From IMG/VR virus record IMGVR_UViG_3300038424_000251, positions 1 through 64,000 of that record: 64,000 nucleotides of DNA; one strand, given 5' to 3'. The position numbers were made by a program, and so were the translations under genes. How positions within the stretch are numbered: position 1 is the first letter of the stretch; every line of letters starts with the position of its first letter. A model generated the notes under the pieces. It saw only the letters and a list, made by a program, of their open reading frames with translations. It made no database searches and had not been told where the DNA came from. Positions 2,541 to 58,817 of the stretch are shown here, piece after piece.

Positions 2541-3068
2541 TTATTTTCTTGGAGTAAAATTTACTGGGTCTAATAAAGGAGCTATTTCCTGTTCGCCACA
2601 GTCGGCCAAATATGATTTTACTTTTGGATTTTTTAATGCTTCACGGAATGATTGTTTCCATGTTATAGGAACGGGATTACCTGCTTCGTTGATATCTGGA
2701 TTATTATGAATTCTCTTTGCTTCTGACATCCAAGAACGAGTTACTTTATTAGTATGCTTGCGAATTCTCTCTCTATGTGATTCATTTGTATCATTAGGTT
2801 TTCGCAAACCGTTAGTTTTTATCTTAATCCAGATTTTATGTGGTTTTTCATCTTCATTGATATAAATAGAAGCACCTGAACGGTGTGTTTGCCAATCATT
2901 TCCTTCCATGTAACAGAACCAGTTTTTTCCTTCTACAATACCATCCCAATTTGGCGAACCGTCATTAAATCCTCCGGGCGTAGGGTATAGTTTAGGGTCA
3001 GGCGACCTATTAACGGCAGGAGCATGGCTAATCCATTCGATTATTTGAAGTAAAGTTTTTAGTTTCAT
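2541..3068 (-). CDS. Hypothetical protein with MKLKTLLQIIE leader
   Basis: Shared leader motif; TATTTATA 4 nt upstream of ATG on the minus strand. Confidence 0.6.
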   Translation of the reverse strand: MKLKTLLQIIEWISHAPAVNRSPDPKLYPTPGGFNDGSPNWDGIVEGKNWFCYMEGNDWQTHRSGASIYINEDEKPHKIWIKIKTNGLRKPNDTNESHRERIRKHTNKVTRSWMSEAKRIHNNPDINEAGNPVPITWKQSFREALKNPKVKSYLADCGEQEIAPLLDPVNFTPRK

Positions 3069-3087
3069 TGAATATAAATATGATGTA

Positions 3088-3981
3088 TTACTTGTAAGAT
3101 TCCCTTAATAAATTTAACTTTGAATCTCTTTGTGTGATTGTTATTCCCTGTTTCTTAAAAAAGTTTTCAACAGTATTCATATCATCTTCGGTAAGCATAC
3201 CTACATCCCAATATACCATACCTGTCTTTTTACCTTCTTCTGAAAAATGAAAACGAAAACGAACATTTGACCAATTGTGTGAAAATTCAGGTTCCCCACT
3301 ATGTTCTACACCATGATATCTTGATGATGGCAACCATTTATAGACAACTTCTCCATATTTACCTATCAAACCCAATCCCCATCGCCTTTCCTCTTTAGAT
3401 TCTTTTAAGTCATGATATTTAGCAATCCATTTTTTCCTTGTTTCAGACCTATCAGATGAGTACCGATTCATCATATCTTCTGCTTGTTTTCTACTAAATC
3501 CTAAATGACCGATGAGAAAATCTTTTAGTTCTGAGGTATAAGCTCTTATTTCTTCTGGGTCACCATAATATTTGTCACCCATCATTAGTGCATCATAAGT
3601 TATCTTATTGAATAGTTTTTTATGATAATTTATTGCATGAACTAATTCGTGATAAATAACACTGTCCACATATGCAGCATATTTACTTGAAGAATTATAG
3701 CGACCATGATAGACTCCCCCTATGGTTATAGTATCATCCTTAAAATTATATTCACCATATGGTAGAGTATCTTCTGAATAATATGTGTAACGAATTCTTA
3801 TGGATAGAATTTTATTTAGAAAGACATCAATTAAATCGTTCATAGAAAGACCAAACATTAAAAGTTGTTTAGAATCATATTCTTTTGGGAATGTTTTCTG
3901 CATATAAGTTCGCAAAGGTTCTCTAAATCTTTCCAAATCTCCAAAAAGATTTTCTAATAACAATATTTTTAATTTAATCAT
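3088..3981 (-). CDS. Leader + HExxH zincin-like domain + shared C-terminal domain
   Basis: MIKLKILLLE; YHELVHAINY with downstream YYGDPEEIRAY; the C-terminal module after DLKE resembles the ends of 5322..7064 and 27977..29086. Confidence 0.6.
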   Translation of the reverse strand: MIKLKILLLENLFGDLERFREPLRTYMQKTFPKEYDSKQLLMFGLSMNDLIDVFLNKILSIRIRYTYYSEDTLPYGEYNFKDDTITIGGVYHGRYNSSSKYAAYVDSVIYHELVHAINYHKKLFNKITYDALMMGDKYYGDPEEIRAYTSELKDFLIGHLGFSRKQAEDMMNRYSSDRSETRKKWIAKYHDLKESKEERRWGLGLIGKYGEVVYKWLPSSRYHGVEHSGEPEFSHNWSNVRFRFHFSEEGKKTGMVYWDVGMLTEDDMNTVENFFKKQGITITQRDSKLNLLRESYK

Positions 3982-4441
3982 TTATTTTAGGCTTCTGTGC
4001 ATTACAACAACCATACTCATTCACTTTTTCTTCAAGTTGAAATAGGTCTGGATTGGATTTATTCAGAGATTGAAATAACATACAAATTGATGTTTTTTGG
4101 TCAAAAGAACGACAATTTTCACATCTAACTTGACGATTTACCAACCCTGCTTCTTTTGGTGTATATGAGGCAACTTCCTTTCCTTTTAAATTTGGTGACG
4201 GTTTACCATAGACATAGAAATTACAACTCATTTCACAAGTTACTTTAATTTTTCCAAGAATGGAACATGTCAATCCATCTTCACCTGTCCACATTCTACA
4301 TGTAGCGCATTGAGCAAACTTTTCCTTTGGACCTTTTGGTTCTAAATATATAAAAACTTCTCTTGTAAGTTTGTTTTTTTGTTGTTTTACTTCGGAAAAT
4401 ACTTCCAATATCAACTTTTTTATATCATTTTTATTCATCAT
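3974..4441 (-). CDS. Cys-rich protein with two HiPIP-like CxxC...C...C units
   Basis: QCATCRMW..CSILG..SCNFY and RCENCRSF..CMLF..YGCCNA; leader IKKLILEVFSE. Confidence 0.45.
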   Translation of the reverse strand: MMNKNDIKKLILEVFSEVKQQKNKLTREVFIYLEPKGPKEKFAQCATCRMWTGEDGLTCSILGKIKVTCEMSCNFYVYGKPSPNLKGKEVASYTPKEAGLVNRQVRCENCRSFDQKTSICMLFQSLNKSNPDLFQLEEKVNEYGCCNAQKPKIND

Positions 4442-5310
4442 AATTGTACAAAGAAATAGTGAACATCTTCATCTAAATCATAGGCCCAAACTATAAAGTG
4501 TCTAGTATAAGGAGATATATTTCTAGCAAATTCAAATTGATGCCTATCTATTTTTTTTCTTAAAAAATCTGGAACATCGCATCTTGATAAAAATAAATGT
4601 TTATTAACTATTTGTTTTTGACTATTAGGAATATCTTTTGGATCACCAACAAGATGTTCCATTTCTGTGGCATCCGATGCTATATAGTTTCTAAATGATG
4701 GGTCATTAAGACCTGTTTTACAATTTCCTACATAACCATACCTTTTCCCACCTTCTGTTAATACAGTTTCATTATTTTCTAATCTAAAATAAGATTTACC
4801 GCCTTGTATTGGAGAGTAACAAATTTCTCTGATTGAAACTTTTAATTTCAATCCTTCTTTTATATGAGAAAATTTTCCTTTTTGGACATAAGCTAATGTT
4901 AAATGTGGGTTATATTCCGGGTAATCATTTTCATTCAGATAAATTCCTGAAAGTTCGTTTAATTTTTTTAAAACTGGACTGTTTACTTTAAACATTGCTA
5001 CATCATATTGGGGCGATGAAACAAATTTATCTAATCCTGTAAGTTCAACAACAAAAGGTTTTTGTCCTTTAAGAAGTTGACGAACTTCCAATTCATTTAA
5101 ATCCTTCAAAAATCCATAACGAATAGTGACATGACTTTCCGTTTCTCTGCCATATTCCCCGTTTTCTACATATAAATCATTGTTATTGATTAGTTGTTTA
5201 CTAAATTTTAAAATAGAATCAGATGATTCTTTTGGAATCATAGCCATCAAACAACCTTTTTTAGCCGTTGCGTCTCTATTTTCATTTACCATTTCTTTTA
5301 GATTTATCAT
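4438..5310 (-). CDS. 2H phosphoesterase (T4 gp57B/Acb1-like) plus C-terminal module
   Basis: Two HxT motifs, SHVTIRYG and YNPHLTLAYV; leader MINLKEMVNE; second module begins after VLTE. Confidence 0.75.
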   Translation of the reverse strand: MINLKEMVNENRDATAKKGCLMAMIPKESSDSILKFSKQLINNNDLYVENGEYGRETESHVTIRYGFLKDLNELEVRQLLKGQKPFVVELTGLDKFVSSPQYDVAMFKVNSPVLKKLNELSGIYLNENDYPEYNPHLTLAYVQKGKFSHIKEGLKLKVSIREICYSPIQGGKSYFRLENNETVLTEGGKRYGYVGNCKTGLNDPSFRNYIASDATEMEHLVGDPKDIPNSQKQIVNKHLFLSRCDVPDFLRKKIDRHQFEFARNISPYTRHFIVWAYDLDEDVHYFFVQL

Positions 5311-5321
5311 AATTTTTATTA

Positions 5322-7064
5322 TTATATATGTCTAACATACGTTTTATAATCATTAAGACCTATATGTTGAGGTTTATATATTCCTTTTTTTACTAACCAA
5401 TCTTCTGCTTTATGTCTATCTTCGTCAGTTGGTGGAAATTCATTCCACAAAATTGTATTTTTTGGGGTTTCTACAAAATATCTCCATCTTGTTCCTAATG
5501 ATGTGGAACCTATTCTCCCATGTGGTAATTCAGAATGATCTACTGCCATAACATCAGGAACCATTTCATCATAAGCTTCTATATTTCCATGATAAACTAC
5601 TCCTATGTAACCACGCCTTTTATTTATATCTTTTGCTTGTTCGTATGGACTCATTATTTCACTCATAGGCTTCTTAATATTACCAAAAATCAATTTATAT
5701 AATTCTTTAACATACTGAATAAATTTTGGTTTATCCAATTCGTAAATTCTTTTAAGTTTTTTTCGAGTATCGGAATGTGCCCAATATAACATAGCTACAC
5801 TATGAGGATGAATTGATTGATGGCCAGCAATATCATCTATCAAAGCTCTGAATCCTTCTTTTTTATTTGTAGGCCAAAATTTGCTAATTATAATTTCAAT
5901 ATTATTTTTATAATCATAAAGATTGGTTTTGAATTCTATATCTCTTAATTCATGTTCTATTCTATTAAATTTGTCTCCCGGTTCTTTAACAGTTCCAAAA
6001 ACATCTACACCTCTAATAGATGGATTTCTAAACCATCTTAATGATTTTTTGGATAATCCATATTTTTTAGGAAATTTTTTACGAAATTTTTTAAGAGTAT
6101 GTCCTAAAATATCTTGCAATAAATGTCTAACTTCATGTTTAACGTCGCGTAGTTTTCTTTCCATTGATGTGTTAAATTGTTCAATTAATTCTTCTACACA
6201 AAATGTTATATAAATAGCATTTTTTCCTGAGTCATAATAATCAGTACCTCCTAATGTTTTAGGGAGGGAATTATATTCTTCGTATGTTTCTACTGCTTTA
6301 AAATAAATCCAAAATGTTTTAAAATAACCTTCTCCTTCAATACTTGGTGTTCTGTAAAAGAACATATTTTGTTTAATTTTTATTGGAAATGCCATAATAA
6401 CCATCTCACCATTAGGAGATTTAAAAGGTTTAAGAGTTTCTCCTGATTTTATTTCTTGATATTTATTACCCACAATTTTATATGGATGGGCTAATGTTCC
6501 AAAAGACCTTGCCACATACGATTGAAGCATATCAGGAGATTTAGTTTGATACTTCTTTGATTTAAGGAAGGCTTCTATAATATAACCAGCAGCAGATTTG
6601 GTGATATCTATTACTTGTTTTTCAATTTCTAATGGAATCTCAAATGCTTCATTTAATTTTTTTATTTCAGGTCTTCTAAACATCGTAGGTCCAAAAAAAC
6701 TTGAAAGACTATAATCTTTTTTTCTTCCTCTATTATGTATGAATCCTAACGATTTATAAAATTTATCTAATTTCTTTTTGTACCGTTTTTCTGCTTCAGG
6801 AGAAAGAGTAATAATTAATCCGTGTTTATCAGCAAATGATTTAATGGCTTCTATAACTTTTCTTCCTATTCCTTGTTTACGAAACTCTTTCTTTATTTTT
6901 ATATCACGTAGATGAAATATATCTTGCCTGTAGCTTATATTAAAAAATAAACTTTCTAATTGAGGATACTGATGGATTAAGGACTGACGAAAATCTTCTG
7001 TCTCTTTATCAAGGTCAGTCTTATCTCCAAATCCTTCTATTATTAATGGTTTGAGTTTTATCAT
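5322..7064 (-). CDS. Multidomain: leader + GNAT + HExxH zincin-like + shared C-terminal domain
   Basis: MIKLKPLIIE; FRKQGIG...KFYKSLGF (GNAT motifs); KHEVRHLLQD; C-terminal VDHS..RWRY..NTILW. Confidence 0.65.
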   Translation of the reverse strand: MIKLKPLIIEGFGDKTDLDKETEDFRQSLIHQYPQLESLFFNISYRQDIFHLRDIKIKKEFRKQGIGRKVIEAIKSFADKHGLIITLSPEAEKRYKKKLDKFYKSLGFIHNRGRKKDYSLSSFFGPTMFRRPEIKKLNEAFEIPLEIEKQVIDITKSAAGYIIEAFLKSKKYQTKSPDMLQSYVARSFGTLAHPYKIVGNKYQEIKSGETLKPFKSPNGEMVIMAFPIKIKQNMFFYRTPSIEGEGYFKTFWIYFKAVETYEEYNSLPKTLGGTDYYDSGKNAIYITFCVEELIEQFNTSMERKLRDVKHEVRHLLQDILGHTLKKFRKKFPKKYGLSKKSLRWFRNPSIRGVDVFGTVKEPGDKFNRIEHELRDIEFKTNLYDYKNNIEIIISKFWPTNKKEGFRALIDDIAGHQSIHPHSVAMLYWAHSDTRKKLKRIYELDKPKFIQYVKELYKLIFGNIKKPMSEIMSPYEQAKDINKRRGYIGVVYHGNIEAYDEMVPDVMAVDHSELPHGRIGSTSLGTRWRYFVETPKNTILWNEFPPTDEDRHKAEDWLVKKGIYKPQHIGLNDYKTYVRHI

Positions 7065-7065: not shown

Positions 7066-7668
7066 TTATTTTTGTTTCATTCTTTCAAACCAATCATCTC
7101 CATAAATCTTTGCTAGTTTATCATATATTTTTTTGGTAAGATGAATTCCTGCATCGGTCATCTGACCTAATTTGTCTTTTCCTTGCAAAATGCGTTGCCT
7201 TTGTTTTATATGAAAAACTCCTAAATCTGAACCTATTCCCAGTCTTTGATATGGTTTTTCTACCCATACACCCACTGCTCCAAATTCATTTGCAGCAAAC
7301 CCTACAGGTTTGTCTTCTATAAATGCTACTACCGTTTGATTCATAACAGGCAAATTTTCTTGTCTCATCTCATTATCCGACATATAAACAGGTTCATTAT
7401 TTTTATCACGTAATATGTCACCATTTTTATCAAATTTTACATATTTCACCTTTTCATTTCTTTGTCTATATTCTACAGTATAAGGACCATGTTGTTGACT
7501 AGCTATTAATTTAGGATATTCACTTTTATTGCCAAGCCAAGACAAACCACCTTCTGATTCATATCGGGTATATGCGTTAGAAGGAATGTGTCCTGTATAA
7601 TGATACTTAAGAAAATCTTCTTTATCAGACTCTATGATATTCTCAATAATGTCTCTTAATTTAATCAT
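7066..7668 (-). CDS. Leader + GNAT-like acetyltransferase
   Basis: MIKLRDIIENIIE; VWVEKPYQRLGIG and MTDAG. Confidence 0.6.
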   Translation of the reverse strand: MIKLRDIIENIIESDKEDFLKYHYTGHIPSNAYTRYESEGGLSWLGNKSEYPKLIASQQHGPYTVEYRQRNEKVKYVKFDKNGDILRDKNNEPVYMSDNEMRQENLPVMNQTVVAFIEDKPVGFAANEFGAVGVWVEKPYQRLGIGSDLGVFHIKQRQRILQGKDKLGQMTDAGIHLTKKIYDKLAKIYGDDWFERMKQK

Positions 7669-7994
7669 GGTTGTCGTAATGTTTTAATAAATGCTGCACC
7701 TTCTGGTGTAGTAATTCCCCATACAATTTTCCATCGAGGGTGTTCTCTATGTAAATCCCTAATCATTGCGGTTGCTATACCTTTTCTTCTTTCTGATTCA
7801 ACCGTTTCCATTCCGTCAATGTAAATTACATTTTCATATGTGGAATAATCAATTTTTCCAACTTTAATTCCCCTTTTGTCGTATGCAATAAGAGTGCAAT
7901 AATTCTGACCTTTATAATTATCTCTACAATCGTGTGTAAATTCTAAAGGCTCTCCTTTTACATATTCTGGTATAAGGTGTTTTAATTTTATCAT
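7665..7994 (-). CDS. Leader + GNAT acetyltransferase
   Basis: MIKLKHLIPE; ERRKGIATAMI and TPEGAAF. Confidence 0.7.
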   Translation of the reverse strand: MIKLKHLIPEYVKGEPLEFTHDCRDNYKGQNYCTLIAYDKRGIKVGKIDYSTYENVIYIDGMETVESERRKGIATAMIRDLHREHPRWKIVWGITTPEGAAFIKTLRQP

Positions 7995-9442
7995 ATTCCA
8001 GCCACTTTCTTAGCAATTGCTAATGCTTCATCTTTGGTCAATCCGGGATTACTATACCATGCATCAGCTACAGCATTTATAATTTCTTTGAATAATGGAC
8101 CCGGTTTCAAACCAAGGTCTTGTAAATCATATCCTGTTATAGGCATTTTTGGTTTAAGAGGGACGGTTTTTAATTTTTCCAATCTTTGTCTGATATTAGT
8201 AATTTGATTAGGCATTGACGATGCTTCAGAATGAGAAATATTATCTGCATGAATTAAATTTAATATATTTTCTAACTGTTCTCCTATTTCATTACGAAAT
8301 TTCAGTAGAGTTTTATCTTTGAATTTAACTCCAGCATCACCAGCTTGTTTTAATCTCATATGATTACGAACACCCAATTTAACTGCATCAATCAATTCTC
8401 TTGGATATTTTAATCTGTTCATTACATCTTCAACAATTTTTTCACCAGCTTCCTCATGTCCATAAAAATGAACACCTTTAGTCTCGGGGTCAACTGTTTT
8501 TGTGACAGTTTTTCCTATATCATGAAATAATGCCATTAACCGTTGAACTAGTATTGGTTCGGTTTTGCTTAATACATCAAGAGTATGTTGGAATACATCA
8601 TGTTTATGATGAATATTTTGAGCCATCTTTATTGCTGGTACTAATTCAGGAATTACAAATGGTAATAGTTCTGTAATTTTTAATAATTTAATTCCTTTGG
8701 ATGGAGAGCCAGTGATAAGAATTTTATTCAATTCGTCACGAATTCTTTCTTGGGAAATATTTTTAAGTTGAGAAGCATTTTTCTTTAAGCCTCTTATCAT
8801 AAATAAAGGAAGTGTCCAATCATATTTAACCGCAAAACGAACTGCTCTTAGCATACGGAGTGGGTCATCAGTAAAGATTTTATCGGGATTTAAAGGTGTT
8901 CTTATGATACCAGCTTTAATATCATCTTTGCCTTTACCTGTTAAATCAAGAATTTCTCCTGTGGATAAATCTTTTAATAAACTATTTACAGTAAAATCTC
9001 TTCTTTCAACATCATCTTTGAGTTCGCCGCCGGTAACTATTGGTTTTCTTGAACCCGGAATATATTTTTCTTTTCTTGGCATTACAGCTTCGATATCTAT
9101 ATCACTCAAATCTATACCATCATGAACAACACCACGAAGATTAAATTTAGCTGTTCCAAATCTTGGAAAAATTACAGGGTTTGAACTTGGGTCTTCTTCA
9201 GTTTCTCCACCTTTATAAGCTCCAACTTTTTTAGTAATCCATTTAGCAAATTCAATTCCACCATTTGGAGAATTAACAAGTAAATCCAAATCTTTCGGGT
9301 CTTTACCCATAAATTCATCGCGGACATATCCACCTGCTATGAATACTTTACCTTCCCATTCTGTTTCTTGGATGGTCTTTTTAATAAAGTCTTCTACAGC
9401 TTTTTCTTTTACACCTTCTAAAATAAGTTGTTTTATGCTCAT
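7991..9442 (-). CDS. cca: CCA-adding tRNA nucleotidyltransferase / poly(A) polymerase family with HD domain
   Basis: GGYVRD, DLD, RRDFTVN, DDPLRMLRAVRF, ERIRDEL, HDIGK. The start at 9442 gives the leader MSIKQLILE; the ORF track starts at 9478. Confidence 0.85.
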   Translation of the reverse strand: MSIKQLILEGVKEKAVEDFIKKTIQETEWEGKVFIAGGYVRDEFMGKDPKDLDLLVNSPNGGIEFAKWITKKVGAYKGGETEEDPSSNPVIFPRFGTAKFNLRGVVHDGIDLSDIDIEAVMPRKEKYIPGSRKPIVTGGELKDDVERRDFTVNSLLKDLSTGEILDLTGKGKDDIKAGIIRTPLNPDKIFTDDPLRMLRAVRFAVKYDWTLPLFMIRGLKKNASQLKNISQERIRDELNKILITGSPSKGIKLLKITELLPFVIPELVPAIKMAQNIHHKHDVFQHTLDVLSKTEPILVQRLMALFHDIGKTVTKTVDPETKGVHFYGHEEAGEKIVEDVMNRLKYPRELIDAVKLGVRNHMRLKQAGDAGVKFKDKTLLKFRNEIGEQLENILNLIHADNISHSEASSMPNQITNIRQRLEKLKTVPLKPKMPITGYDLQDLGLKPGPLFKEIINAVADAWYSNPGLTKDEALAIAKKVAGI

Positions 9443-9481
9443 TAAAATATAATTTTTTATTATACCATTATTTTTCATATT

Positions 9482-10033
9482 TTACAATAAAAATCTATTA
9501 AAGAACGCTTCATTTCTACCAGTCAATTTTTTTCCAGCAGAACTTCTAATATACTCTTTTTTTGCTGTATTCCAATTATTTCTCAATACTGCATCCGTAA
9601 ATTTTGGAAATTTTTCAAGACCGCCTAAACTGAAAGAAAAATCCATCAACATTTCCTCTTGTTTTTTGGATAACATAATATTTACATTATATGTTTTTTT
9701 GATATAATTGCGCATTCTTTGTTTTGCTATTTGTAAATCTTGAATAAGAATTTTTTCAGCAGTTTTTTGGTCTATACCATTTTTGAAATTGATAATTTCG
9801 TCATCTTCCAATTTATGACCATAAGCTATGTTCCATCCGGCTATATCTTTGTAAGGAAACCACAATTTTTTTTGCTTATCAAATCCAGCATATATTGAAT
9901 TTTCAACGGTTTTAATATATTTTATGAAATCGGGAGAAAATTCCTGATGCTGAATATGAATAGCAGGTGGTTGTGTTGCTGGTGACAAAGCTTCAATCAT
10001 AAATTCTTCAATAATTTCCCTTAGTTTAATCAT
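9482..10033 (-). CDS. Leader + phage lysozyme-like muramidase
   Basis: MIKLREIIEE; IKTVE...YKDIAGWNIAYGHKL...AEKILIQDL...LMDFSFSLG..L.KFPKF (GH24-like). Confidence 0.7.
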   Translation of the reverse strand: MIKLREIIEEFMIEALSPATQPPAIHIQHQEFSPDFIKYIKTVENSIYAGFDKQKKLWFPYKDIAGWNIAYGHKLEDDEIINFKNGIDQKTAEKILIQDLQIAKQRMRNYIKKTYNVNIMLSKKQEEMLMDFSFSLGGLEKFPKFTDAVLRNNWNTAKKEYIRSSAGKKLTGRNEAFFNRFLL

Positions 10034-10083
10034 ATCTATAAATAGGTGTGACTTTAGATGAAATATTCATATTTATAAGAGAT

Positions 10084-11296: not shown

Positions 11297-11734
11297 ATGA
11301 AAAAAGAACAATTAAAAATATTGGTAAGAGAAGTCTTGAAGGAAATGGTTTATAGTAGAAGAAGCAGCTCTTCGGACACTTACGAAGGATATGACATTGA
11401 ATTTGAATCGTTGATTATACCCGGCATTTCTACAGAAAATGATACAGTATCGGTATTGGTGAGTATTGAATATGATTTTGACCCCGGATATGAGCCAAAA
11501 GGTATGTTCGGTCCTCCAGAATGTTCAGACCCCGGAGAAGGAGCTTCTATAAATGTAACGGATTATTGGCCTACAAGCTTGAGAGTATCCAATGAAGCTG
11601 GCAAAGAAACCGAATATGAACCAGATAAATTAACTGTTGACCAGCAAGAAATTCTTAAAAAGGCTATAGAAGACCACATGTATCAAAATGAAAATAAAAT
11701 TGATGATATGATTTTAAATACTTTAGGATTTTAG
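11297..11734 (+). CDS. Acidic hypothetical protein with LKILVREVLKE leader
   Basis: Leader motif followed by an acidic domain. Confidence 0.55.
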   Translation: MKKEQLKILVREVLKEMVYSRRSSSSDTYEGYDIEFESLIIPGISTENDTVSVLVSIEYDFDPGYEPKGMFGPPECSDPGEGASINVTDYWPTSLRVSNEAGKETEYEPDKLTVDQQEILKKAIEDHMYQNENKIDDMILNTLGF

Positions 11735-12465: not shown

Positions 12466-12804
12466 ATGATTAAGTTAAAACAATTAGTAAAAGAGATAAT
12501 AGACCGACTTGTATGGAAAATTCCAGAAAATGCGCCTGTGCCAGTAGTAGATGTATTACATAAACTTGTAAAAGTATCCTTTTCCAGACATAAATCTCAC
12601 ATTGAAAAGTATATTAGGTTAGACAACCCAAAAGGTGGTTCTGAATGGATTATTACTAATCCAAACAATCCAAAAGTCACTTTAGCTTATGATACAGATA
12701 CTAATAAGTGGTGGGCTATGGCTGACCATCCTTCTTTTGGACCAAGTATAGGAATAATAAAAGATATTCAACATTTATTTCAAATAATAGATAACTGGGT
12801 GTAA
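12466..12804 (+). CDS. Hypothetical protein with MIKLKQLVKE leader
   Basis: Shared leader motif. Confidence 0.6.
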   Translation: MIKLKQLVKEIIDRLVWKIPENAPVPVVDVLHKLVKVSFSRHKSHIEKYIRLDNPKGGSEWIITNPNNPKVTLAYDTDTNKWWAMADHPSFGPSIGIIKDIQHLFQIIDNWV

Positions 12805-12806: not shown

Positions 12807-13199
12807 ATGATTAAATTGAAACAACTACTTTATGAAGCAATTGATGAAAATGATCTTATTGTGGTTTCAACCCCAACTAATGTTTCTATATCATATCGTA
12901 TTAGTCTTATGAAAGGTGCTACAGCTAGTATAGATAGAATAGATAATAATGAATGGTGGGTATCAAGAGTATTGGTTAGTGATGAATCTTCAAGAAGACA
13001 AGGAATTGGTTCAATTCTATTGACAAGAGCTGTTCAGGAAGTGTTAAAGCATGAACCTAATGCTAAAATAATTGTTGCACCGGGTGGATATGAAAGTAAA
13101 ACAAGACAACAAACTAGATTTTATAAGAAAAATGGGTTTATTCCAGTAAAAGGGCAACTCGGAGTTTTAATGTATAACAATCCAAATATAAGTAAATAA
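12807..13199 (+). CDS. Leader + GNAT acetyltransferase
   Basis: MIKLKQLLYE; VSRVLV...RRQGIGSILL...RFYKKNGF. Confidence 0.75.
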   Translation: MIKLKQLLYEAIDENDLIVVSTPTNVSISYRISLMKGATASIDRIDNNEWWVSRVLVSDESSRRQGIGSILLTRAVQEVLKHEPNAKIIVAPGGYESKTRQQTRFYKKNGFIPVKGQLGVLMYNNPNISK

Positions 13200-16989: not shown

Positions 16990-17052
16990 TAAATTAAATC
17001 CGTCAGTCTCCGTAATCTAATTTAAATTTTCACATATTTATAAGGTAAACCG

Positions 17053-23050: not shown

Positions 23051-23635
23051 ATGAATCCTGAAACAAATTTACCTAGTTCTAATATTCCAAAAGGGGTGGG
23101 AGGTTTAGATGTTAGAGGCCAAATTATTAGAATGAACGTGAGAGCTGCATCAGCTCTGGTAATGGCTAAAGATACAGGTCGATTATTGCTTGCTTTTCGT
23201 TCCACTTCTGCCCTTGGACATATTAAAGAACAAAAATGGAATCTATGGGGTGGAAAAGTAGATTTAGAGGAAAGTCCAGAAATGAGTGCGGTTAAATGGA
23301 CAAAAAGACAAACGAGTTATACTGGACATTTTACCGATTCAATACCATTATATACATTTTTTAGTACTACTACAAATTTTAGATATTATATTTTTTTATT
23401 AGTGGTAGAAAAAGAATTTACACCAACTATAGAAGAAGGCGGTTCAATATTGAATTATAAATGGGTAGAATATGGTGAATGGCCTGAACTTTTGCATCCT
23501 ATAGTTAAAGAATTATTTATTAAAGTAAGTTCTAAGTTAAAAGGAATAATAGAAAAAATCATTATCAAAGAAAGTTTAGCAAAAGAATATATTACAATTA
23601 AGCTTAAAGAATTAATAAAAGAATTGTGGCAATAG
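23051..23635 (+). CDS. Nudix-fold protein with degenerate Nudix box
   Basis: GRLLLAFRS...WNLWGGKVDLEESPEMSA, but KWTKRQ replaces REUxEE; the leader-like motif IKLKELIKE is at the C-terminus. Confidence 0.65.
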   Translation: MNPETNLPSSNIPKGVGGLDVRGQIIRMNVRAASALVMAKDTGRLLLAFRSTSALGHIKEQKWNLWGGKVDLEESPEMSAVKWTKRQTSYTGHFTDSIPLYTFFSTTTNFRYYIFLLVVEKEFTPTIEEGGSILNYKWVEYGEWPELLHPIVKELFIKVSSKLKGIIEKIIIKESLAKEYITIKLKELIKELWQ

Positions 23636-23639: not shown

Positions 23640-23972
23640 ATGATTAAGTTAAAAGACATGATACCTAAAAAGTATTTTTATCATATTACACCAAGGAAAA
23701 ATATTCCAAATATGAAAATACATGGTATAGTTCCCAAACCAGATAATCCTGCTCCTTTTTGTGATAAAGTAGTTTGTTTATTTGATAATAGGACATCAAT
23801 AGAAACTGCATTTACGAGTTGGTTGTTAGGTAAATTTAATAAAAATGAGCCAATGGTTCTTTTAACTATAGACCCTACGGGGTTAGACATACATTCATCT
23901 GAAATAGCATATGAATTTAGAGTTTTTAAACCCATACCTTGGAAAAATGTTGTAAAAGTTGAAAATATATGA
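23640..23972 (+). CDS. Leader + ADP-ribosyltransferase-like fold
   Basis: MIKLKDMIP; FYHITPRKNI.NM..HGI.P, VCLF, LLTID, YEFRV..PIP pattern of small ART/Tpt1-like domains. Confidence 0.55.
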   Translation: MIKLKDMIPKKYFYHITPRKNIPNMKIHGIVPKPDNPAPFCDKVVCLFDNRTSIETAFTSWLLGKFNKNEPMVLLTIDPTGLDIHSSEIAYEFRVFKPIPWKNVVKVENI

Positions 23973-24880
23973 TTAAACTAAAAAACATTTTAACTGAAGT
24001 AGCTGCAGATAGGTCATGGAATTCTCAATTATGGAACTCTGATTTATGGCAATCAAATTTATGGAACTCTGATATATGGAAATCTCATATATGGAACACA
24101 GATTTGTGGAAATCTGATTTATGGAAGTCTGATATATGGAATCCTAGTTCAACTACTACTGCTGCTACATCAAAAGAACTGACTGAAATTGAACAACATA
24201 AACCTAATGAAGTAGAAGCTTTGCCGGGTATTTTTGTGGACCCTTCAATTATAAAACATATTCAAATATTAAATAAACTTGGATTTCACACAGTTTTTTC
24301 TTGTTCTGGAATTTCATATGACCATCCCAATTTGAAGGCTGGTTCTCGTAGTGGTTATGTAATGTTTAGACATGGTTTAACTCCTAATCAAATAACGAGA
24401 ATATACAAAGCTACACTTGGTATAAAGGGGGTAAATTATGATCCGATTCATCTTAGGTCAGTTCCTTATGTTAGTTTTAGGGGTAGTGATTCTGAAAGAT
24501 TGAATGGTTGGAACCAATTTGTGAAGAATTTAATGAAGCGTAGAGTATATTATAAAAAATTAGGTAAAATCAAGGAATCAGAAGAAAAACATTCACGTAA
24601 AGGGAAATGTTATGAGCTTACCGGTAGATATGTTTCTACTCACCCCGATTCCATTCTTGTTCATGGTAAATTAGTAAATCCGTTTGTGAAAGGATTACCA
24701 GAAATAGAGCATGCATGGGTGGAAATTGGTGATAAAATTTTTGACCCCATAATGGATATAACTTGGCCAAAACAAGCATATGAGTCTTTATTTCATGCTA
24801 AACCATATAAAAAATATACTCAGGAGGAAGTTCTTAAAATTACTCTTAGAACAGAGCATTGGGGGCCTTGGGATGTATGA
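23969..24880 (+). CDS. Multidomain: leader + W-pentapeptide repeat + SCSG domain + Cys-His-Asp (transglutaminase-like) domain
   Basis: MIKLKNILTE; (LWxSD) repeats; VDPSI..IQILNKLGFHTVFSCSG; GKCYE...HAWVE...IFDP. Confidence 0.55.
   Translation: MIKLKNILTEVAADRSWNSQLWNSDLWQSNLWNSDIWKSHIWNTDLWKSDLWKSDIWNPSSTTTAATSKELTEIEQHKPNEVEALPGIFVDPSIIKHIQILNKLGFHTVFSCSGISYDHPNLKAGSRSGYVMFRHGLTPNQITRIYKATLGIKGVNYDPIHLRSVPYVSFRGSDSERLNGWNQFVKNLMKRRVYYKKLGKIKESEEKHSRKGKCYELTGRYVSTHPDSILVHGKLVNPFVKGLPEIEHAWVEIGDKIFDPIMDITWPKQAYESLFHAKPYKKYTQEEVLKITLRTEHWGPWDV
24014..24142 (+). repeat. In-frame 15-bp tandem repeat (~9 units, consensus ttatggaa(c/a)tctgat)
   Basis: Directly visible; encodes SWNSQ-LWNSD-LWQSN-LWNSD-IWKSH-IWNTD-LWKSD-LWKSD-IWN. 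Confidence 0.9.
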
Positions 24881-26857: not shown

Positions 26858-27976
26858 ATGAAAATATCCAAAATTAAAGAAATAATTGATGAAGTTATAT
26901 CTGAAGAAATGGGGGAGGGATTTGGTTATGTCTATGCGAAAGACAGAGCTAAAGACCCAAAATCCATTCCCGGAGAACACTGGCGAATTAAATTTCAAAG
27001 CGCTCACGATTTAAAGAAACATGGTAATACGGAAAAATCAAAAGTGTCAGAAATTATCTATGAAATTCCTCGAAAGATTGGAATAAATGCAATGGGTGAC
27101 GAAATAGGTAGAACTTCCACTGACGAAGGAGAACTCAGGAATATGATTGGTAATATGAAACCCGGCCAATCTATTCTTTTTCATGGTAAAGAAGGTATAA
27201 AAGGACCTTTAATTTATATTGTTAAACGTGAGGGTATTGGATATGAAGTTGAGAATCATAGAAAACAAAAGCAAGAAATCACCAATGCTGACCAACTCGA
27301 TTTAATTATCAGTGGTATTGCAAAACAAGCAAACATTTTATTTAGATTTTGGAAACAAAATAAACCATCCACATATTCAGCTCCGAAATTACCAGTTGTA
27401 TCTAAAGAACAAATTAGGGAAATAATTAAAGAATTGATTGATGAAATGTGGATTGCATGGGAAGAAGATAAAAATGACAACAAAGATATAACAGAAAGTA
27501 AATATATGAATAATAAAAAAGAATTCTTAAGAGATATAATTCGTGAAGCTATTCAAGAAGTAGAATTTGAAGATGCTCCTGATGAAAAATATCAAGAAGA
27601 ACAAGAAATACTGTCTATGAAGAGAATACAATCATATGCTCATTGGATAAAAGAAAATCTTAAAGATGCTGCTAGTGAAATTGGTGGAGTAATTCAGAAA
27701 ATAGTAACCGAAATTGATGGTCTTGTTTCGGCTCATGAAAAAGGGAAGGAAATTTCACCAGTCAATGTTCACGAAGTAGCTCCTCCGGGGTGGGAAGGAA
27801 CAGTAAAAGCTATGAAGAAACATTCTGTTGGTGGGGCTAAAAGGTGGGCTCCAAAAAAGAAAAAAGAAGAAACCGTGGATGTGGAAGAAGCCAAAAAGAA
27901 GAAAAAGATTACTAATCCATATAAATTAGCATGGTGGATGAAAGGTAAAGGTTATAAATCACATAAACAAGATTAA
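26858..27976 (+). CDS. Modular protein with three KEIIxE-type motifs (putative internal head polyprotein)
   Basis: MKISKIKEIIDEVISE, IREIIKELIDE, LRDIIREAIQE; C-terminal VAPPGWEGTVKAMKKH...NPYKLAWWMK. Confidence 0.55.
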   Translation: MKISKIKEIIDEVISEEMGEGFGYVYAKDRAKDPKSIPGEHWRIKFQSAHDLKKHGNTEKSKVSEIIYEIPRKIGINAMGDEIGRTSTDEGELRNMIGNMKPGQSILFHGKEGIKGPLIYIVKREGIGYEVENHRKQKQEITNADQLDLIISGIAKQANILFRFWKQNKPSTYSAPKLPVVSKEQIREIIKELIDEMWIAWEEDKNDNKDITESKYMNNKKEFLRDIIREAIQEVEFEDAPDEKYQEEQEILSMKRIQSYAHWIKENLKDAASEIGGVIQKIVTEIDGLVSAHEKGKEISPVNVHEVAPPGWEGTVKAMKKHSVGGAKRWAPKKKKEETVDVEEAKKKKKITNPYKLAWWMKGKGYKSHKQD

Positions 27977-29729: not shown

Positions 29730-30191
29730 ATGAGAACATCACAATTAAAAGGACTTATAAAAGAGATTATAAGAGAATATTTTAATGAAGGACGATATGG
29801 GAAGTATGAAAAAATAAAGGGTATCGGAGGAGTAAGAGGAGTTCGTTCAGCTCAGAGAGGATTATTAAAGCATGTACCTCTTAATATTGACCCAAGTTCT
29901 CCAAAAATGGGAACTCGTATTAAAGTCCCCTCTACTATGATTAAAAGAAAGTATTATTCAGATAAAGTAATCAGAATAAAAATTCCTGCTGGTACTGAAG
30001 GATTTGTGAAAGAACTTGTTGTAGGATTTAATGTTGGTGCTATAAGTCCAAAGAATTTTAGAATTGTTGGTCCAACGGGTAAAAAAAATGTACCTCAACC
30101 ATTAACATCTCATCAATTAAGATATATCGTAAATCTTGGTAAATACGGTTATGTGTCTTTAACAAGAGATGAATTTGAAGTAATTAAGTAA
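29730..30191 (+). CDS. Basic hypothetical protein with LKGLIKEIIRE leader
   Basis: Start refined to ATG 29730 after TATTTATG. Confidence 0.55.
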   Translation: MRTSQLKGLIKEIIREYFNEGRYGKYEKIKGIGGVRGVRSAQRGLLKHVPLNIDPSSPKMGTRIKVPSTMIKRKYYSDKVIRIKIPAGTEGFVKELVVGFNVGAISPKNFRIVGPTGKKNVPQPLTSHQLRYIVNLGKYGYVSLTRDEFEVIK

Positions 30192-49848: not shown

Positions 49849-51195
49849 TTAGAATCCATGAAGAGCTTCTTTTTCACGTTTCTGTTCAATTTTTCTTTCA
49901 ACTTCTATTTCAATTTCTTTCGTTAATTTTGCTAAATCAGCTAATGCCTTTAGTCTATATGTTAAACTACCACCATGTCTTTCTATATTACCCAATCTAC
50001 GTCTTTGACGTTCTCTAGAAGCAATGGCATGTTTTAAGCAGTATTCTCTGATGGTAGCAGGTTGTCCACAATCTATACAACGCTTTGCTTTTTTCATTCT
50101 TAATCGCCATTTATGTTGATTTGAAATGGGTAAATCAGAAAATTCGTCTTTAATTGGAGGACGACCTATTTCATTAATTATTTCAATTACATAATCATTA
50201 AAAGAAGGTTGTTGCTGTTGTTTTTTACGCTCTTTTTGGATTGCATCGTCAACTGCTTTATCAAATGCTAATTGCAATTTATATGTTTTGCTACCAAATC
50301 TTCTTGTTTTATAACCTAATGCACGTCTTTGAGCTTCTCTATAAATAATAGCATGTTTTAAGCAATATCTTGCTACAACAGCAGGTTCTCCACATATTAT
50401 ACATTTATTTTCTTTTTCTCTTCTTAGTTGATATTTTCTTTGTCTTGAGATAGGTAAATCAGAAAATTCATCATGGTATGGTTTTCCAGTTACTTCATCA
50501 ATTACTTCTTTAATAAGTTGTTTGAAATCATTTTTTGTGATAAATGTTTGTTCTTCTAACTCATAACCAATTTTTGCGCCTCTCATCATATCTCGCCTAT
50601 ATTTTTCTCTAGCTCTCATTGCGGGTTTAAGAATATTTTTGAATCTATCGGTTTCTCTTCGCAGTTCTTCTTTGTCTTTTTTAAGTTTTGCACAATCTCT
50701 GCAAACCTGCATTTGATTTCCTTTGTCGTCTTTTTCTGCTTTTTTCTTAAAACACTTAATACAAATACCTTGTTTCAATGCTTGAAGTCGTCTAGCTTTA
50801 AGTTCATCTTCACATTTTTGACAAAGTTTTTTACCCGGCAGGGGTGGATTTGGACATCTCGCACAAGAACCACGTTTCTTTATTAATTTTTCTCTAGCTG
50901 CTCTAAATTGTTTAAGACAATCTTCACAATATATTCCTCTTTTTCCATTTGGTTTTATAATTGCTGGATTTTTACCACATTGAATACACAATCCTTTATT
51001 TCTTCTGGCTTGTTTAAGTTTCATTGAGGCAAATTTTTGTCTTTGTTTTGTAGTCATGCCTTTCAAGGCAAATTGTTCTTCCGGTGTTAATTCATACTCG
51101 GTGCTTGTACGAAAATCAGGACCATATTGCCTGTTATAAATTCTAACCTCTTTTATAACTTCCCAAATTAATTTATGGAATTCCATTGGTGTCAT
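49849..51195 (-). CDS. Basic multi-zinc-finger protein with repeated modules and KLIxEVIxE motifs
   Basis: Three CxxC...CxxC units, then two copies of DEFSDLPIS..(Q/H)K..LR...CxxCGxPA...YCLKHAI..RE.QRR.LG. Confidence 0.65.
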   Translation of the reverse strand: MTPMEFHKLIWEVIKEVRIYNRQYGPDFRTSTEYELTPEEQFALKGMTTKQRQKFASMKLKQARRNKGLCIQCGKNPAIIKPNGKRGIYCEDCLKQFRAAREKLIKKRGSCARCPNPPLPGKKLCQKCEDELKARRLQALKQGICIKCFKKKAEKDDKGNQMQVCRDCAKLKKDKEELRRETDRFKNILKPAMRAREKYRRDMMRGAKIGYELEEQTFITKNDFKQLIKEVIDEVTGKPYHDEFSDLPISRQRKYQLRREKENKCIICGEPAVVARYCLKHAIIYREAQRRALGYKTRRFGSKTYKLQLAFDKAVDDAIQKERKKQQQQPSFNDYVIEIINEIGRPPIKDEFSDLPISNQHKWRLRMKKAKRCIDCGQPATIREYCLKHAIASRERQRRRLGNIERHGGSLTYRLKALADLAKLTKEIEIEVERKIEQKREKEALHGF

Positions 51196-51306
51196 ATTTT
51201 ATAAATATAATCAGTATTTTAGTAGATGAATTAAAAAAGGATTGAAATGGTATAAAAAGTTTACTATTTAGGTTTATGGTGTAAAGTACACTAACAAATA
51301 AAATAT

Positions 51307-56414: not shown

Positions 56415-56422
56415 CTATCCAT

Positions 56423-57199
56423 ATGCTGGAAGAAAAATATTTTGATGCTAAAAGAGTTATCATCAAGAAAATAGATAAGGCTGTAGCTGAAGAAATAATT
56501 ATAAAATATCATTATTCACATAAATGGTCTTTATGTCAGATTGCGTATGGAATTTTTTATATTACCGACAAGCAATGTCAATTTTTTAATGCTGTAGAGG
56601 AAACTCTTATTGGTTGTATTGTATATGGTCAGCCCGTTGGTCGTTCTGCTGCCGAATCTATTTCAAAGTTAGTTGGTGTTTACGAAGTATTTGAACTTAC
56701 TAGATTATTCATTCATGATGGATACGGTAAAAATATAGAAAGTTATTCAATATCAAAATCTCTAGAACTTGTTAAAAGAGATTTCCCACATATTAAAGCA
56801 ATAATTTCTTATGCAGATGGTGAGCAGGGACATAAAGGAACTATTTATCAGGCTTGTAATTTTCATTATCAAGGTAATTCTTCTTTAGCTTTGATGCCCA
56901 ATTACTCTGTTTCTTTAGTTGGACCTCCTTATAAATGGATTCACTCAAGAACTATTTCATCAACATATGGTTCGCATAACGTTGAATATTTGAAAAAAAA
57001 GATAGGTCATACATTCTGGAGAAAAAAAGAATCTTCAAAACACAGATATGTTTACTTACTTGGAAATAAAAAAGAAAAAAGAAAAATACTGTTAAATCTT
57101 AAACATCCATTTCAATCTTACCCAAAGAGTACAAATCATACCGATGAAATTGAACAAATCATAGTAAATCCTCTTACAGAAAATCAATTCTTTGGATGA
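56423..57199 (+). CDS. Mom-like DNA modification protein (GNAT fold)
   Basis: IIKYHYSH, GCIVYG, ELTRL, ESYSISKSL, IISYAD..QGHKGTIYQACNF.YQG, KHRYVY. Confidence 0.75.
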   Translation: MLEEKYFDAKRVIIKKIDKAVAEEIIIKYHYSHKWSLCQIAYGIFYITDKQCQFFNAVEETLIGCIVYGQPVGRSAAESISKLVGVYEVFELTRLFIHDGYGKNIESYSISKSLELVKRDFPHIKAIISYADGEQGHKGTIYQACNFHYQGNSSLALMPNYSVSLVGPPYKWIHSRTISSTYGSHNVEYLKKKIGHTFWRKKESSKHRYVYLLGNKKEKRKILLNLKHPFQSYPKSTNHTDEIEQIIVNPLTENQFFG

Positions 57200-57221
57200 A
57201 ATATTGATATTTATAAGAGAT

Positions 57222-58817
57222 ATGATAATGTCTTTTATTACAGATATGGGTGAGAAACTCAAATTGGTTGACCAAAAAACTGGTAATATTATTGAATTGC
57301 CTCAACATGCTTATTGGGATGATTTAGGTAAAGGTAAACCAGAAGTTAAGGAAACAGGTGACAATTTAGAACATCTTAAAAAAAAATATAATGTACCGGA
57401 CAATCGCATAATTAGAGCAAAGGAACTTACACAAAGTATGAAAGAAGCTGTATCTAGTGAAAATATCAATATTATTGTTGACAGAGAATCGGAACTTGGT
57501 TATAGAGTTGTAAATGCTGTTTATATTAGAGGCGGATTTGAAAAAGGAATTGAAAAAATAAAGAAATTATCCAGTTATAAAGGAGTAGTTCAGTTTGTAA
57601 ATCCAGAAACAGGAGAAACGGTAAAAGGGCCTAAATATGATACAGCAACACAAATTATGAAGGGAAGAAAAATTAGTGATGTATTACCCCGTGGAATAAA
57701 ACAACAACCACCAACTGAACCAACACAATATGAACCAAGAGATAGAGTTGATGAATTAGAATGGGGAAAAAAACCACAACAATATAAAAGTCAAATTATA
57801 GTTAGCAAAAAATGGTTAGGAAAATATAAAGTTACTGCTTATGATGAAAATGGTAATATAGCAGGAAATGGAACAGAACAATATGAATTTGCGTCACCTG
57901 ACCATGTTGTAGTAACAGTCAGATATTTACAGAAAAAACATCCTGAATGGTCCGTTATAGATTTAACTAAAGAAATATTTATGAATGAAATCACTAAATT
58001 TAGAAACATAATCAGAGAGTGTATCTCTGAAATAAAAAAAGAGAACGACCCAAGAACACTTCTTAAAGAGTCACTTCGTAATGTAGTTAAAGAAGTTTTA
58101 AAAGAAATAGCGACTGTTTCTAAACCAGAACCAACCGAAGAGGAAAAAACAGACACTTCCAAGGGATATTTCAAAAAATTGAATCAACGTGTGGATAAAA
58201 CTAATGATAAATTACAGGCTGAACTTGAAACGATTGTTCATGGTATTGACCCTACTTGGGAAGTCTATTGGGATGACCACAATCAGTTGATTGTTCGTGC
58301 TCATAATCTTTTATATGTTAGAATTGTGCCAAAATTTGAAAATAATTATGATATTGATGCTATGGTGAAATTGGTTGATAGAGTCCGTGCTATAGCTCAA
58401 ACATGGGACCAAGTTAAGGCATTTGTCAAAGCTAACTTTAATGATTTGAAAAATCAGACTATTCCTGATAAATTACATAAAAAATCTGTTGATAACTATG
58501 AAGATAGAGAAGTAATTAAAAAGGATGCTGGCCCGGAGAAAGCTAAAGTTAATTTTAGATATCAAGACCCAAAACATAGTAGTGTTAAAGATACTAAGAA
58601 AGATGATAAAAATTATAATGAACCTCAAACCAAGAGGGCAGAAGATATGCCTGACCAACCAATGAAGCAGGTGACAGAGCCCGGTAAAGACCCGGAATCT
58701 AAAAATAAAAACATTACAAAAACTCCTCAGGTTAAACCACCAAAACACAAACTTGACAAAAAATTGAGAGTGAAAGACAAGAAAACTTCCAAATTTACTT
58801 TTAAGAAGACAACCTAA
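57222..58817 (+). CDS. Modular protein with internal IIRECISE / VVKEVLKE motifs
   Basis: Late motif upstream; several x-x-E junctions; Lys/Pro-rich tail. Confidence 0.55.
   Translation: MIMSFITDMGEKLKLVDQKTGNIIELPQHAYWDDLGKGKPEVKETGDNLEHLKKKYNVPDNRIIRAKELTQSMKEAVSSENINIIVDRESELGYRVVNAVYIRGGFEKGIEKIKKLSSYKGVVQFVNPETGETVKGPKYDTATQIMKGRKISDVLPRGIKQQPPTEPTQYEPRDRVDELEWGKKPQQYKSQIIVSKKWLGKYKVTAYDENGNIAGNGTEQYEFASPDHVVVTVRYLQKKHPEWSVIDLTKEIFMNEITKFRNIIRECISEIKKENDPRTLLKESLRNVVKEVLKEIATVSKPEPTEEEKTDTSKGYFKKLNQRVDKTNDKLQAELETIVHGIDPTWEVYWDDHNQLIVRAHNLLYVRIVPKFENNYDIDAMVKLVDRVRAIAQTWDQVKAFVKANFNDLKNQTIPDKLHKKSVDNYEDREVIKKDAGPEKAKVNFRYQDPKHSSVKDTKKDDKNYNEPQTKRAEDMPDQPMKQVTEPGKDPESKNKNITKTPQVKPPKHKLDKKLRVKDKKTSKFTFKKTT

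Follow-up and report, generated by a model that had tools for sequence, protein, structure and literature searches.

In phage T4, internal proteins carry propeptides of 10-19 residues that direct them to the prohead core, and the prohead protease gp21 cleaves after L/I-X-E (PMC9026906). For IPIII the first ten residues are enough for targeting, which relies mainly on residues 4 and 7, residues 8 and 10 being those needed for processing; an Asp at position 10 prevents processing and leaves targeting in place (PMC9026906). T4 Alt and gp21 undergo C-terminal processing too (PMC9026906). In phages phiKZ, 201phi2-1 and SPN3US, ejection and inner-body proteins have propeptides that mostly exceed 100 residues, carry (S/A/G)-x-E and have little sequence in common (PMC5694885). 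The present analysis concerns a 64-kb window of DNA, the first part of the 365,299-bp IMG/VR record IMGVR_UViG_3300038424_000251, in which a leader of about ten residues heads a series of unrelated proteins. We regard it as fairly likely that this leader serves as a T4-type capsid-targeting propeptide which the prohead protease cuts off.

Translation of the window in all six frames yields ten copies of the strict pattern M-I-[KN]-[LQ]-[KR]-x-[ILM]-[ILV], each of them at residue 1 of a long open reading frame (ORF). Because circularity had to be avoided, the position-specific scoring matrix (PSSM) for this short leader (class A) was trained exclusively on other phages, using 82 distinct N-termini whose consensus reads M1 I2 K/R3 L4 K/T5 x6 L/I7 L/I/V8 x9 E10. 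Position 4 is Leu in 80 of the 82 leaders and position 7 is Leu, Ile or Met in all of them; conservation ends sharply at Glu10, with nothing conserved beyond that position. The matrix returns 11 window matches of at least 15 bits, shuffled proteomes averaging 0.49 matches of at least 10 bits, and ten of the 11 fall at residue 2, the remaining one lying at residues 183-191 of a NUDIX ORF. The leader copies are real and far exceed chance, and shuffles with both the class A matrix and that of a longer helical version (class B, below) rule out a chance origin. Nine of the ten strict leaders carry (L/I/V)-x-E at residues 8-10 or 7-9. An earlier, sequence-only reading of this DNA had reported near-identical N-termini on unrelated ORFs, and the strict copies and high-scoring matches bear this out; among the looser N-termini that it also listed, MSIKQLILE gains the backing of its orthologs, whereas MKLKTLLQIIE scores weakly on the matrix.

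Common ancestry of the tagged proteins is ruled out by their differing Pfam folds together with all-against-all BLASTP of the window ORFs, which returned two paralog pairs only, with tagged proteins in just one. Among the proteins identified in the window, the leader is missing from the sheath, tube, hub, tape measure, wedge and neck adaptor proteins, and equally from DNA polymerase, SSB, UvsX, exonuclease, DnaB, RNR, methyltransferases and an AAA ATPase, in agreement with the prior claim that replication and tail proteins lack it. A GNAT encoded at 52834-53295, between the DnaB and RNR genes, provides an internal control: it has no leader, so that membership of the GNAT family does not by itself entail the tag. 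Comparison of the carriers with the untagged proteins indicates that the tag is neither a trait of one enzyme family nor present on replication or tail proteins. Features of Sec, Tat or lipoprotein signal peptides are absent, the leader being a 10-mer that carries Lys3, Lys5 and Glu10 and has neither a hydrophobic core nor Cys.

The match within the NUDIX ORF 23051-23635 proved to be a conserved C-terminal tag, overlooked by the sequence-only reading. The tag, IKLKELIKE, is encoded at nt 23597-23623, and the protein ends in I-K-L-K-E-L-I-K-E-L-W-Q. In four NUDIX homologs (48-58% identity) I-K-L-K-x-x-I-K is invariant at the C-terminus, and an invariant Glu lies within (I/L)-x-(K/R)-E-(S/G)-L about ten residues upstream of the tag. 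In the window protein the candidate cleavage site I-K-E-S-L precedes the tag, and this arrangement, a putative cleavage site followed by the tag, mirrors the N-terminal layout. In another relative the NUDIX protein is tagged at the N-terminus instead.

Internal copies are provided by the CCA-adding enzyme, which has more than 100 orthologs at identities of at least 60%, on contigs of up to 364 kb. Among the 100 orthologs with the anchor motif, the leader is N-terminal in 68 and internal in 32; the internal leaders follow a GNAT or other upstream module, some of them with no Met nearby, and hydrophobic-x-E stands immediately before the mature Gly in all 100. The window enzyme carries the variant MSIKQLILE where orthologs carry canonical leaders. 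Among relatives (P0002, P0003, P0019, P0071 and P0092) the CCA and HD domains have as fusion partner either a GNAT module, placed at the N-terminus in the three fusions inspected (P0002, P0003 and P0019), or a C-terminal lysozyme; their window counterparts are adjacent separate genes, each with its own leader. The junction of one CCA-lysozyme fusion reads I-N-E-S. Long protease-adjacent ORFs of relatives (L086 75-1793 and L089 6273-8423) contain repeated E-S-(V/T/I)-N-E-(G/A/D) sites, the former also with an internal MIKLKDLMNE, and both ORFs resemble polyproteins carrying numerous protease sites.

Tag copies inside proteins and at a C-terminus speak strongly against a translation-initiation artefact, which they, together with codon variation, rule out as the main cause. 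Leader codons vary synonymously, with four Leu codons at position 4 and both Ile and Lys codons in use, and the DNA upstream of the leaders shows no conservation, indicating that selection acts on the peptide. It is accordingly very improbable that the element is a nucleic-acid feature, either an A/U-rich 5' coding stretch that boosts translation in a host without Shine-Dalgarno sequences or recombination DNA for the exchange of cassettes. The codons are indeed very A/T-rich, no upstream Shine-Dalgarno sequence is visible, and at the post-sheath locus different relatives place different cargo genes behind the same leader, recalling exchange at the internal-protein loci of T-even phages. Yet the hydrophobic residues and Glu are conserved where nucleotides are not, the most highly expressed genes (sheath, tube and capsid) lack the motif, and the motif is retained at a C-terminus and at junctions without Met. 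The portable tag proposed by the sequence-only reading, acting at the level of protein, agrees with the unrelated folds of its carriers and with the freedom of its codons.

The sheath gene places the window with distant T4-like myoviruses, the nearest cultured relatives being Microcystis phage Mel-JY01 (45% sheath identity) and Flavobacterium phage immuto, with the 484-kb uncultured phage LR756508 also among the nearest by sheath comparison. When 12 kb of the window were compared with cultured phages by megablast, no match appeared, so that none is close at the DNA level. Scanning IMG/VR with the sheath protein yielded about 80 related loci, with sheath identities of 52-100%. The window has a G+C content of about 32%.

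Scans with the Mel-JY01 capsid protein and with a protease alignment did not return the phage's own contig. The portal protein of a sibling sample retrieved it, covering 326.6-348.7 kb at 100% identity, and the head region was extended by looking up a neighbouring gene, with identity across a 7.2-kb overlap. The head module, at 326-356 kb of the same contig, encodes a large terminase, a portal, a Peptidase_S77 protease, an acidic scaffold of 530 residues and a Gp23-family capsid protein of 615 residues, with Pfam matches PF03420 and PF07068. The protease is 34% identical to T4 gp21 (E 5e-23), and its catalytic His and Ser align to T4 H85 and S140, gp21 residues named in PMC12991175. The protease gene occupies 18783-19412 (minus strand) and the scaffold gene 8181-9773 of the fetched head locus L321. 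Leader-bearing ORFs of 683 and 376 residues immediately precede the protease gene and one of 421 residues immediately follows it; beyond the capsid gene lie further ORFs with class B and class A leaders, one of which begins MIKLKSLLTE. Coordinate arithmetic puts the capsid gene at about 354-356 kb; were the contig circular or permuted, only some 9 kb would separate it from the start of the window.

Capsid proteins of the clade start with M-x-D-I-K-S-L-L-T-(E/N), followed by K-L-M-x-E-T-R-G-L, and agree in part with the leader in the same register. The phage's own capsid protein begins MENIKSLLTN and is identical to the neighbouring leader MIKLKSLLTE at six of ten positions.

Across the clade the leader heads differing ORFs, often directly beside the prohead protease or capsid gene. 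Two loci (L088 and L089) have a tagged ORF of 73 residues immediately upstream of the protease gene, in a third (L110) several tagged ORFs in a row follow the capsid gene, and dozens of ORFs in the head region of LR756508 bear one or the other form of the tag. A census of 4.47 Mb of fetched loci from relatives yielded 138 distinct tagged proteins, 133 of them tagged at ORF starts, in 53 BLASTP clusters, the largest of which (28 members) is a conserved gene just upstream of the protease. Pfam matches among the cluster representatives include GNAT, NUDIX, zeta-toxin-like kinase, lysozyme and sigma-70 region 4, as well as 2H/Acb1, ART-PolyVal and Tox-ART-HYD1. In several relatives a ribosomal protein S21-like gene lies between the protease and scaffold genes (Table 1), annotated as RpsU in Mel-JY01.

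The longer helical version, class B, approximates K-L-K-x-L-I-K-E-I-I-x-E over about 16-22 residues and repeats the hydrophobic-x-E ending. A matrix trained on 55 N-termini of relatives gave 13 window matches that reach 12 bits or more, shuffles averaging 0.09. It supports class B N-termini for the ORFs at 11297, 26858, 29730 and 30191 and marks 12466, 12807 and 9482 as hybrids of the two classes, with MIKLNNILNEVIQE as an example of the intermediate form that bridges them. Class B copies also occur inside the proteins of 26858-27976, 49849-51195 and 57192-58817. Of the seven helical sites proposed by the sequence-only reading, these four N-termini hold, whereas 3974 and the N-terminus of 49849 score below 4 bits and 43067 is not among the listed matches; nor is the motif confined to N-termini as had been supposed, given the internal copies, two of which lie in a protein (57192-58817) that was not previously listed.

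An amphipathic helix of general use outside the capsid, serving localisation to membranes or assembly sites, oligomerisation, chaperone docking or attachment to neck and tail, would suit these internal class B motifs, and would also suit the interleaving of tagged window genes with neck, sheath and tube genes and not with head genes. Such a role nevertheless appears improbable: the leader is too short and too charged for a membrane anchor or a Sec/Tat signal, its conservation stops exactly at a Glu that fits the protease motif, the tagged genes of relatives cluster with protease and capsid genes, and the leader resembles the propeptides of the capsid protein and of T4 gp24, with the identified tail proteins having none.

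The window carriers of both classes are listed in Table 1. Nine consecutive minus-strand genes, from 10033 down to 2541, each start with the leader or a variant, and since several of them overlap by ATGA the run looks like one operon. The enzyme assignments of the sequence-only reading hold for the lysozyme, the CCA enzyme with its HD domain, the GNATs and the 2H phosphoesterase with both of its HxTx motifs, the zincin remaining a candidate named from its HExxH motif. The window has no tRNA genes, and its CCA enzyme is therefore not explained by adjacent phage tRNAs. For the predicted ADP-ribosyltransferase (ART), the AlphaFold2 model is of moderate confidence (pLDDT 69.6), with leader residues 1-7 disordered, and the best Foldseek matches are to the NAD-binding lobe of Tpt1/KptA (E ~1e-3, TM 0.55); the model points to an ART fold similar to Tpt1/KptA, a more specific assignment not being possible, so that the earlier call stands at the level of the fold. 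Sequence searches of the PDB with four tagged proteins found nothing significant, with weak leads to Tpt1/KptA and Acb1 only, and 12 leader-bearing ORFs have no match in PHROGs.

Table 1. Tagged proteins of the window, upstream motifs and related features, with positions in the window unless a locus of a relative is named.
Feature	Coordinates	Strand	Leader or tag	Details
Starts of strict leader copies	3981, 5310, 7064, 7668, 7994, 10033	-	class A
Starts of strict leader copies	12466, 12807, 23640, 23969	+	class A
Lysozyme, first gene of the minus-strand run	9482..10033	-	MIKLREIIEE (class A)	Pfam PF00959 2e-7, residues 60-171; class A PSSM 20.4 bits, residue 2
CCA-adding/poly(A) polymerase-type nucleotidyltransferase + HD	7991..9442	-	MSIKQLILE, then G	Pfam PolyA_pol 3e-18, RNA-binding domain, HD
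Small GNAT acetyltransferase	7665..7994	-	MIKLKHLIPE	Acetyltransf_1 3e-4; PSSM 23.2 bits
200-aa protein, weak GNAT match (Pfam)	7066..7668	-	MIKLRDIIE	PSSM 17.7 bits
580-aa protein, N-terminal GNAT then HExxH	5322..7064	-	MIKLKPLIIE	Pfam Acetyltransf_7 4e-7; HExxH at residue 310; PSSM 15.4 bits
Acb1-like 2H phosphoesterase	4438..5310	-	MINLKEMVNE	2_5_RNA_ligase2 7e-6 and Acb1 1.4e-5, both slightly below Pfam curated cut-offs; HxTx motifs at residues 60 and 136; PSSM 16.6 bits
155-aa Cys-rich protein, inside the operon	3974..4441	-	weak helical leader	class B PSSM 3.8 bits
297-aa candidate zincin	3088..3981	-	MIKLKILLLE	HExxH = HELVH at residue 111; PSSM 18.1 bits; no match in Pfam, PHROG or PDB sequence searches
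175-aa orphan	2541..3068	-	MKLKTLLQIIE (variant)	PSSM 4.2 bits only
145-aa orphan	11297..11734	+	MKKEQLKILVREVLKE (class B)	class B PSSM 17.8 bits, residue 5
112-aa orphan	12466..12804	+	MIKLKQLVKEIIDR (hybrid A/B)	N-terminus as translated reads MIKLKQLVKE; class A 22.6 bits, class B 24.9 bits; weakly similar to 30191..30952
130-aa GNAT	12807..13199	+	MIKLKQLLYE	Acetyltransf_7 3e-7; PSSM 22.3 bits
NUDIX hydrolase, 194 aa, directly after the sheath gene	23051..23635	+	C-terminal tag	Pfam NUDIX 3e-9; PSSM 22.1 bits, residue 183
110-aa predicted ART-fold protein	23640..23972	+	MIKLKDMIP	PSSM 16.6 bits
303-aa orphan	23969..24880	+	MIKLKNILTE	PSSM 23.2 bits
372-aa highly charged protein	26858..27976	+	class B at N-terminus and two internal copies	class B PSSM 17.2 bits (residue 5), 15.8 (residue 185), 18.7 (residue 223)
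Tail tube gene	29133-29624			matches phrog_4542
153-aa orphan, directly after the tail tube gene	29730..30191	+	MRTSQLKGLIKEIIRE (class B)	20.8 bits
253-aa orphan	30191..30952	+	MMKKSILKRLIKEII (class B)	class B PSSM 14.0 bits
448-aa protein, repeated zinc-ribbon modules	49849..51195	-	internal class B	residue 223, 14.9 bits; N-terminus 1.8 bits
541-aa orphan	57192..58817	+	internal class B	residue 269 (15.7 bits), residue 294 (17.1 bits)
TATTTATA ahead of the tagged operon	10037..10044	-		3 nt upstream of the lysozyme gene
TATTTATA before other genes	17035-17042, 19706-19713, 29095-29102, 33712-33719	+		ORF 17053, sheath, tube and tape measure, respectively
TATTTATA before tagged ORFs	3073-3080 (-), 43045-43052 (+), 51200-51207 (-)
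S21-like gene in relatives	L001 10201-10428; L086 2589-2846; L089 8686-8913; L162 17801-18040

Two of the carriers are built from repeats. After its leader, the protein of 23969-24880 consists of about eight Trp-rich tandem repeats of the form (D/S)(L/I)W(K/N/Q)S, and it has no family match in Pfam, PHROGs or PDB. The protein of 49849-51195 contains CxxC zinc-ribbon repeats, and its two long internal repeats each open with a leader-like helix followed by DEFSDLPIS.

The composition of the carriers bears on whether the cargo is delivered at all. The tag could instead be a protease substrate or assembly tag whose cargo never leaves with the DNA, the tagged proteins being either transient parts of the core or scaffold, lost by degradation or expulsion at maturation, or enzymes kept inactive until a cleavage late in infection. 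The evidence from tag, protease and head module would serve this account equally, and several small, charged, repetitive orphans do resemble core proteins (26858-27976 for example). It is unlikely all the same, given that the cargos include many folded enzymes whose catalytic motifs are intact (2H, NUDIX, GNAT, CCA with HD, lysozyme), that such enzymes have no obvious role in head assembly, and that ART domains typical of delivered polyvalent proteins occur among the tagged relatives.

An upstream motif is common to tagged and structural genes. In a k-mer analysis the 8-mer TATTTATA comes out as the word most enriched in regions ahead of genes. Its copies stand 3-60 nt ahead of the starts of ORF 17053 and of the sheath, tube and tape measure genes, and copies also precede the tagged ORFs or operons at 10033, 3068, 43067 and 51195, with a spacing of 4 nt for ORFs 2541..3068 and 49849..51195. 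Several head-module genes downstream of the capsid gene have a copy ahead of them too; the 70 nt upstream of the capsid and scaffold genes themselves contain none. The claim that tagged and structural genes have the same upstream motif thus holds for sheath, tube, tape measure and some tagged operons. The word is a candidate late promoter. Two oppositely facing copies at 10037-10077 form a divergent promoter-like region, and a near-identical stretch of 30 nt, GAAATATT(C/G)ATATTTATAAGAGATATGA, occurs at 10034-10090 and 57200-57235. This stretch lies within the program-called starts of ORFs 10048-11295 and 57192-58817, whose true starts are probably the ATGs just downstream.

Further observations concern the rest of the window. 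ORFs 125-487 and 2007-2537 are paralogs with 60% identity across 124 residues. Two large ORFs upstream of the sheath gene (19765-22962), at 14386-16989 and 17053-19287, start with M-P-(T/I) as the sheath does, and BLASTP at 1e-4 found no paralogy of either with the sheath. The window also encodes a Mom-like DNA modification protein (56423-57199) and a DNA methyltransferase (48040-48771), suggesting that the virion DNA is modified.

Several observations weigh against the interpretation of the leader as a capsid-targeting propeptide. The leader at 23640 has no Glu, alignment with orthologs showing a short deletion that removes Glu10, and two leaders have Val rather than Leu or Ile at P3. The N-termini of T4 IPI-III, Alt, gp22, gp24, gp67 and gp68 score -8 to -33 bits on the leader matrix, so that the layout is common with T4 and the sequence is not. 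The likeness to capsid N-termini is partial, with 22% of these non-independent sequences scoring at least 6 bits. Class B, found inside proteins too, may be a generic amphipathic helix, and the late timing of TATTTATA is assumed. In the whole-genome census of the cultured phage immuto, only four of 226 ORFs carry strong tags, none of them an annotated replication gene; the tag has thus expanded in the large-genome lineage and not across all relatives. These four lie at 24569-24994, 81525-81944, 102880-103359 and 113188-113946 of NC_055915, and the immuto head module has a further candidate ORF of 73 residues at 123355-123576. The inspected portion of the genome is about 100 kb of 365 kb, and a literature search found no virion proteome or N-terminal sequencing of any relative.

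Under the capsid-targeting interpretation, the leader would dock each cargo on the scaffolding core during prohead assembly, partly imitating the capsid N-terminus, and the S77 prohead protease would cut after Glu, freeing the mature enzyme inside the head. The same module would also work at the C-terminus, as in the NUDIX family, and at the junctions of fused polyproteins. Since the leader has the layout of the T4 capsid tag, the tagged enzymes are probably packed into the virion; their delivery as effectors, for which T4 again offers the analogy, is less certain than targeting and propeptide removal. By that analogy and from the enzyme repertoire, the mature enzymes may stay in the head, be ejected with the DNA and act before phage gene expression; they might lyse the cell wall, repair tRNA 3' ends, degrade nucleotide signals, and acetylate or ADP-ribosylate host targets.

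More tentatively, a clade of large T4-like environmental phages, apparently with Bacteroidota-like hosts, may pre-load its capsids with dozens of interchangeable enzymes by means of a modular cargo code. In this broader and doubtful proposal the code would be a partial copy of the capsid N-terminal propeptide, usable at N-termini, at C-termini and at polyprotein junctions, and the kit would comprise CCA/HD enzymes, Acb1-like 2H phosphoesterases, NUDIX hydrolases, GNATs, ART-fold proteins, HExxH proteases, lysozyme, a kinase and a sigma-like protein. If correct, it would expand the T4 internal-protein strategy to dozens of enzymes, giving these phages a counter-defence and takeover kit at the moment of injection and by far the largest and most enzyme-rich internal-protein arsenal known. 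The activities covered would include those linked to counter-defence, namely cyclic-nucleotide degradation, NUDIX hydrolysis, tRNA 3'-end repair, and acetyl- and ADP-ribosyl-transfer. If the tag loads capsids, a motif of ten residues would predict virion-delivered proteins from metagenomic sequence across a large uncultured clade, and a second targeting peptide, distinct in sequence, would become available for loading foreign proteins into phage heads. The partial match with the capsid N-terminus hints at the origin of such tags and at their docking place on the scaffold, a question that is open even for T4.

The principle is already known from T4. The sequence of the tag, its scale and its enzyme content appear undescribed, as do the C-terminal and polyprotein forms and the partial match to the capsid N-terminus; a full-text literature search for 'MIKLK' returned unrelated papers only, on vaccine design and other subjects.

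Among systems in which proteins accompany phage DNA, the polyvalent proteins of phages and conjugative elements, reportedly described by Iyer, Burroughs, Anand, de Souza and Aravind in 2017, are thought to be delivered together with DNA. They resemble the present set in their repertoire of ART, zincin and lysozyme types, one tagged relative matching Pfam ART-PolyVal, and the CCA-GNAT and CCA-lysozyme fusions of relatives add to the likeness. The difference is that here the domains are mostly encoded by separate genes with one tag each, in place of one giant multidomain protein. The Dar antirestriction proteins of phage P1 are likewise said to enter the capsid through N-terminal determinants, although the head assembly of P1 is unrelated and no short leader is common to many of its cargos.

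The phages phiKZ, 201phi2-1 and SPN3US are closer, being giant phages with many head proteins, a gp21-related protease that cuts after Glu, and propeptides inferred to act in targeting (PMC5694885). The tag described here differs in being 10-22 residues long, a near-identical 10-mer in its short form, with an aliphatic P3 and a capsid and scaffold module of T4 type.

The closest likeness is to T4 itself. In T4 (NC_000866) IPII and IPIII begin M-K-T-Y-Q-E-F-I-A-E and gp24 begins M-A-K-I-N-E-L-L-R-E, and the capsid-targeting sequence of IPI-III and Alt and the propeptide of the vertex protein gp24, both removed by gp21, are, like the new leader, about ten residues long, sit on unrelated carriers, are hydrophobic at positions 4, 7 and 8 and have Glu at 10. 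The T4-like layout asserted by the sequence-only reading is upheld in leader length, hydrophobic positions and L/I-x-E ending, with the S77 protease encoded in the same genome. Further likeness lies in the gp21-family protease itself, in cargos that include a predicted ART-fold protein and likely counter-defence enzymes, and in the C-terminal processing for which Alt and gp21 are precedents. Packaging and cleavage are proven in T4, whereas here they are predicted from sequence. The systems differ in scale, T4 having four cargos where the 64 kb of the window hold at least 12 tagged genes and the clade at least 53 cargo families, and in kind, the present tag occurring on many recognisable enzymes and in longer helical, conserved C-terminal and internal polyprotein forms.

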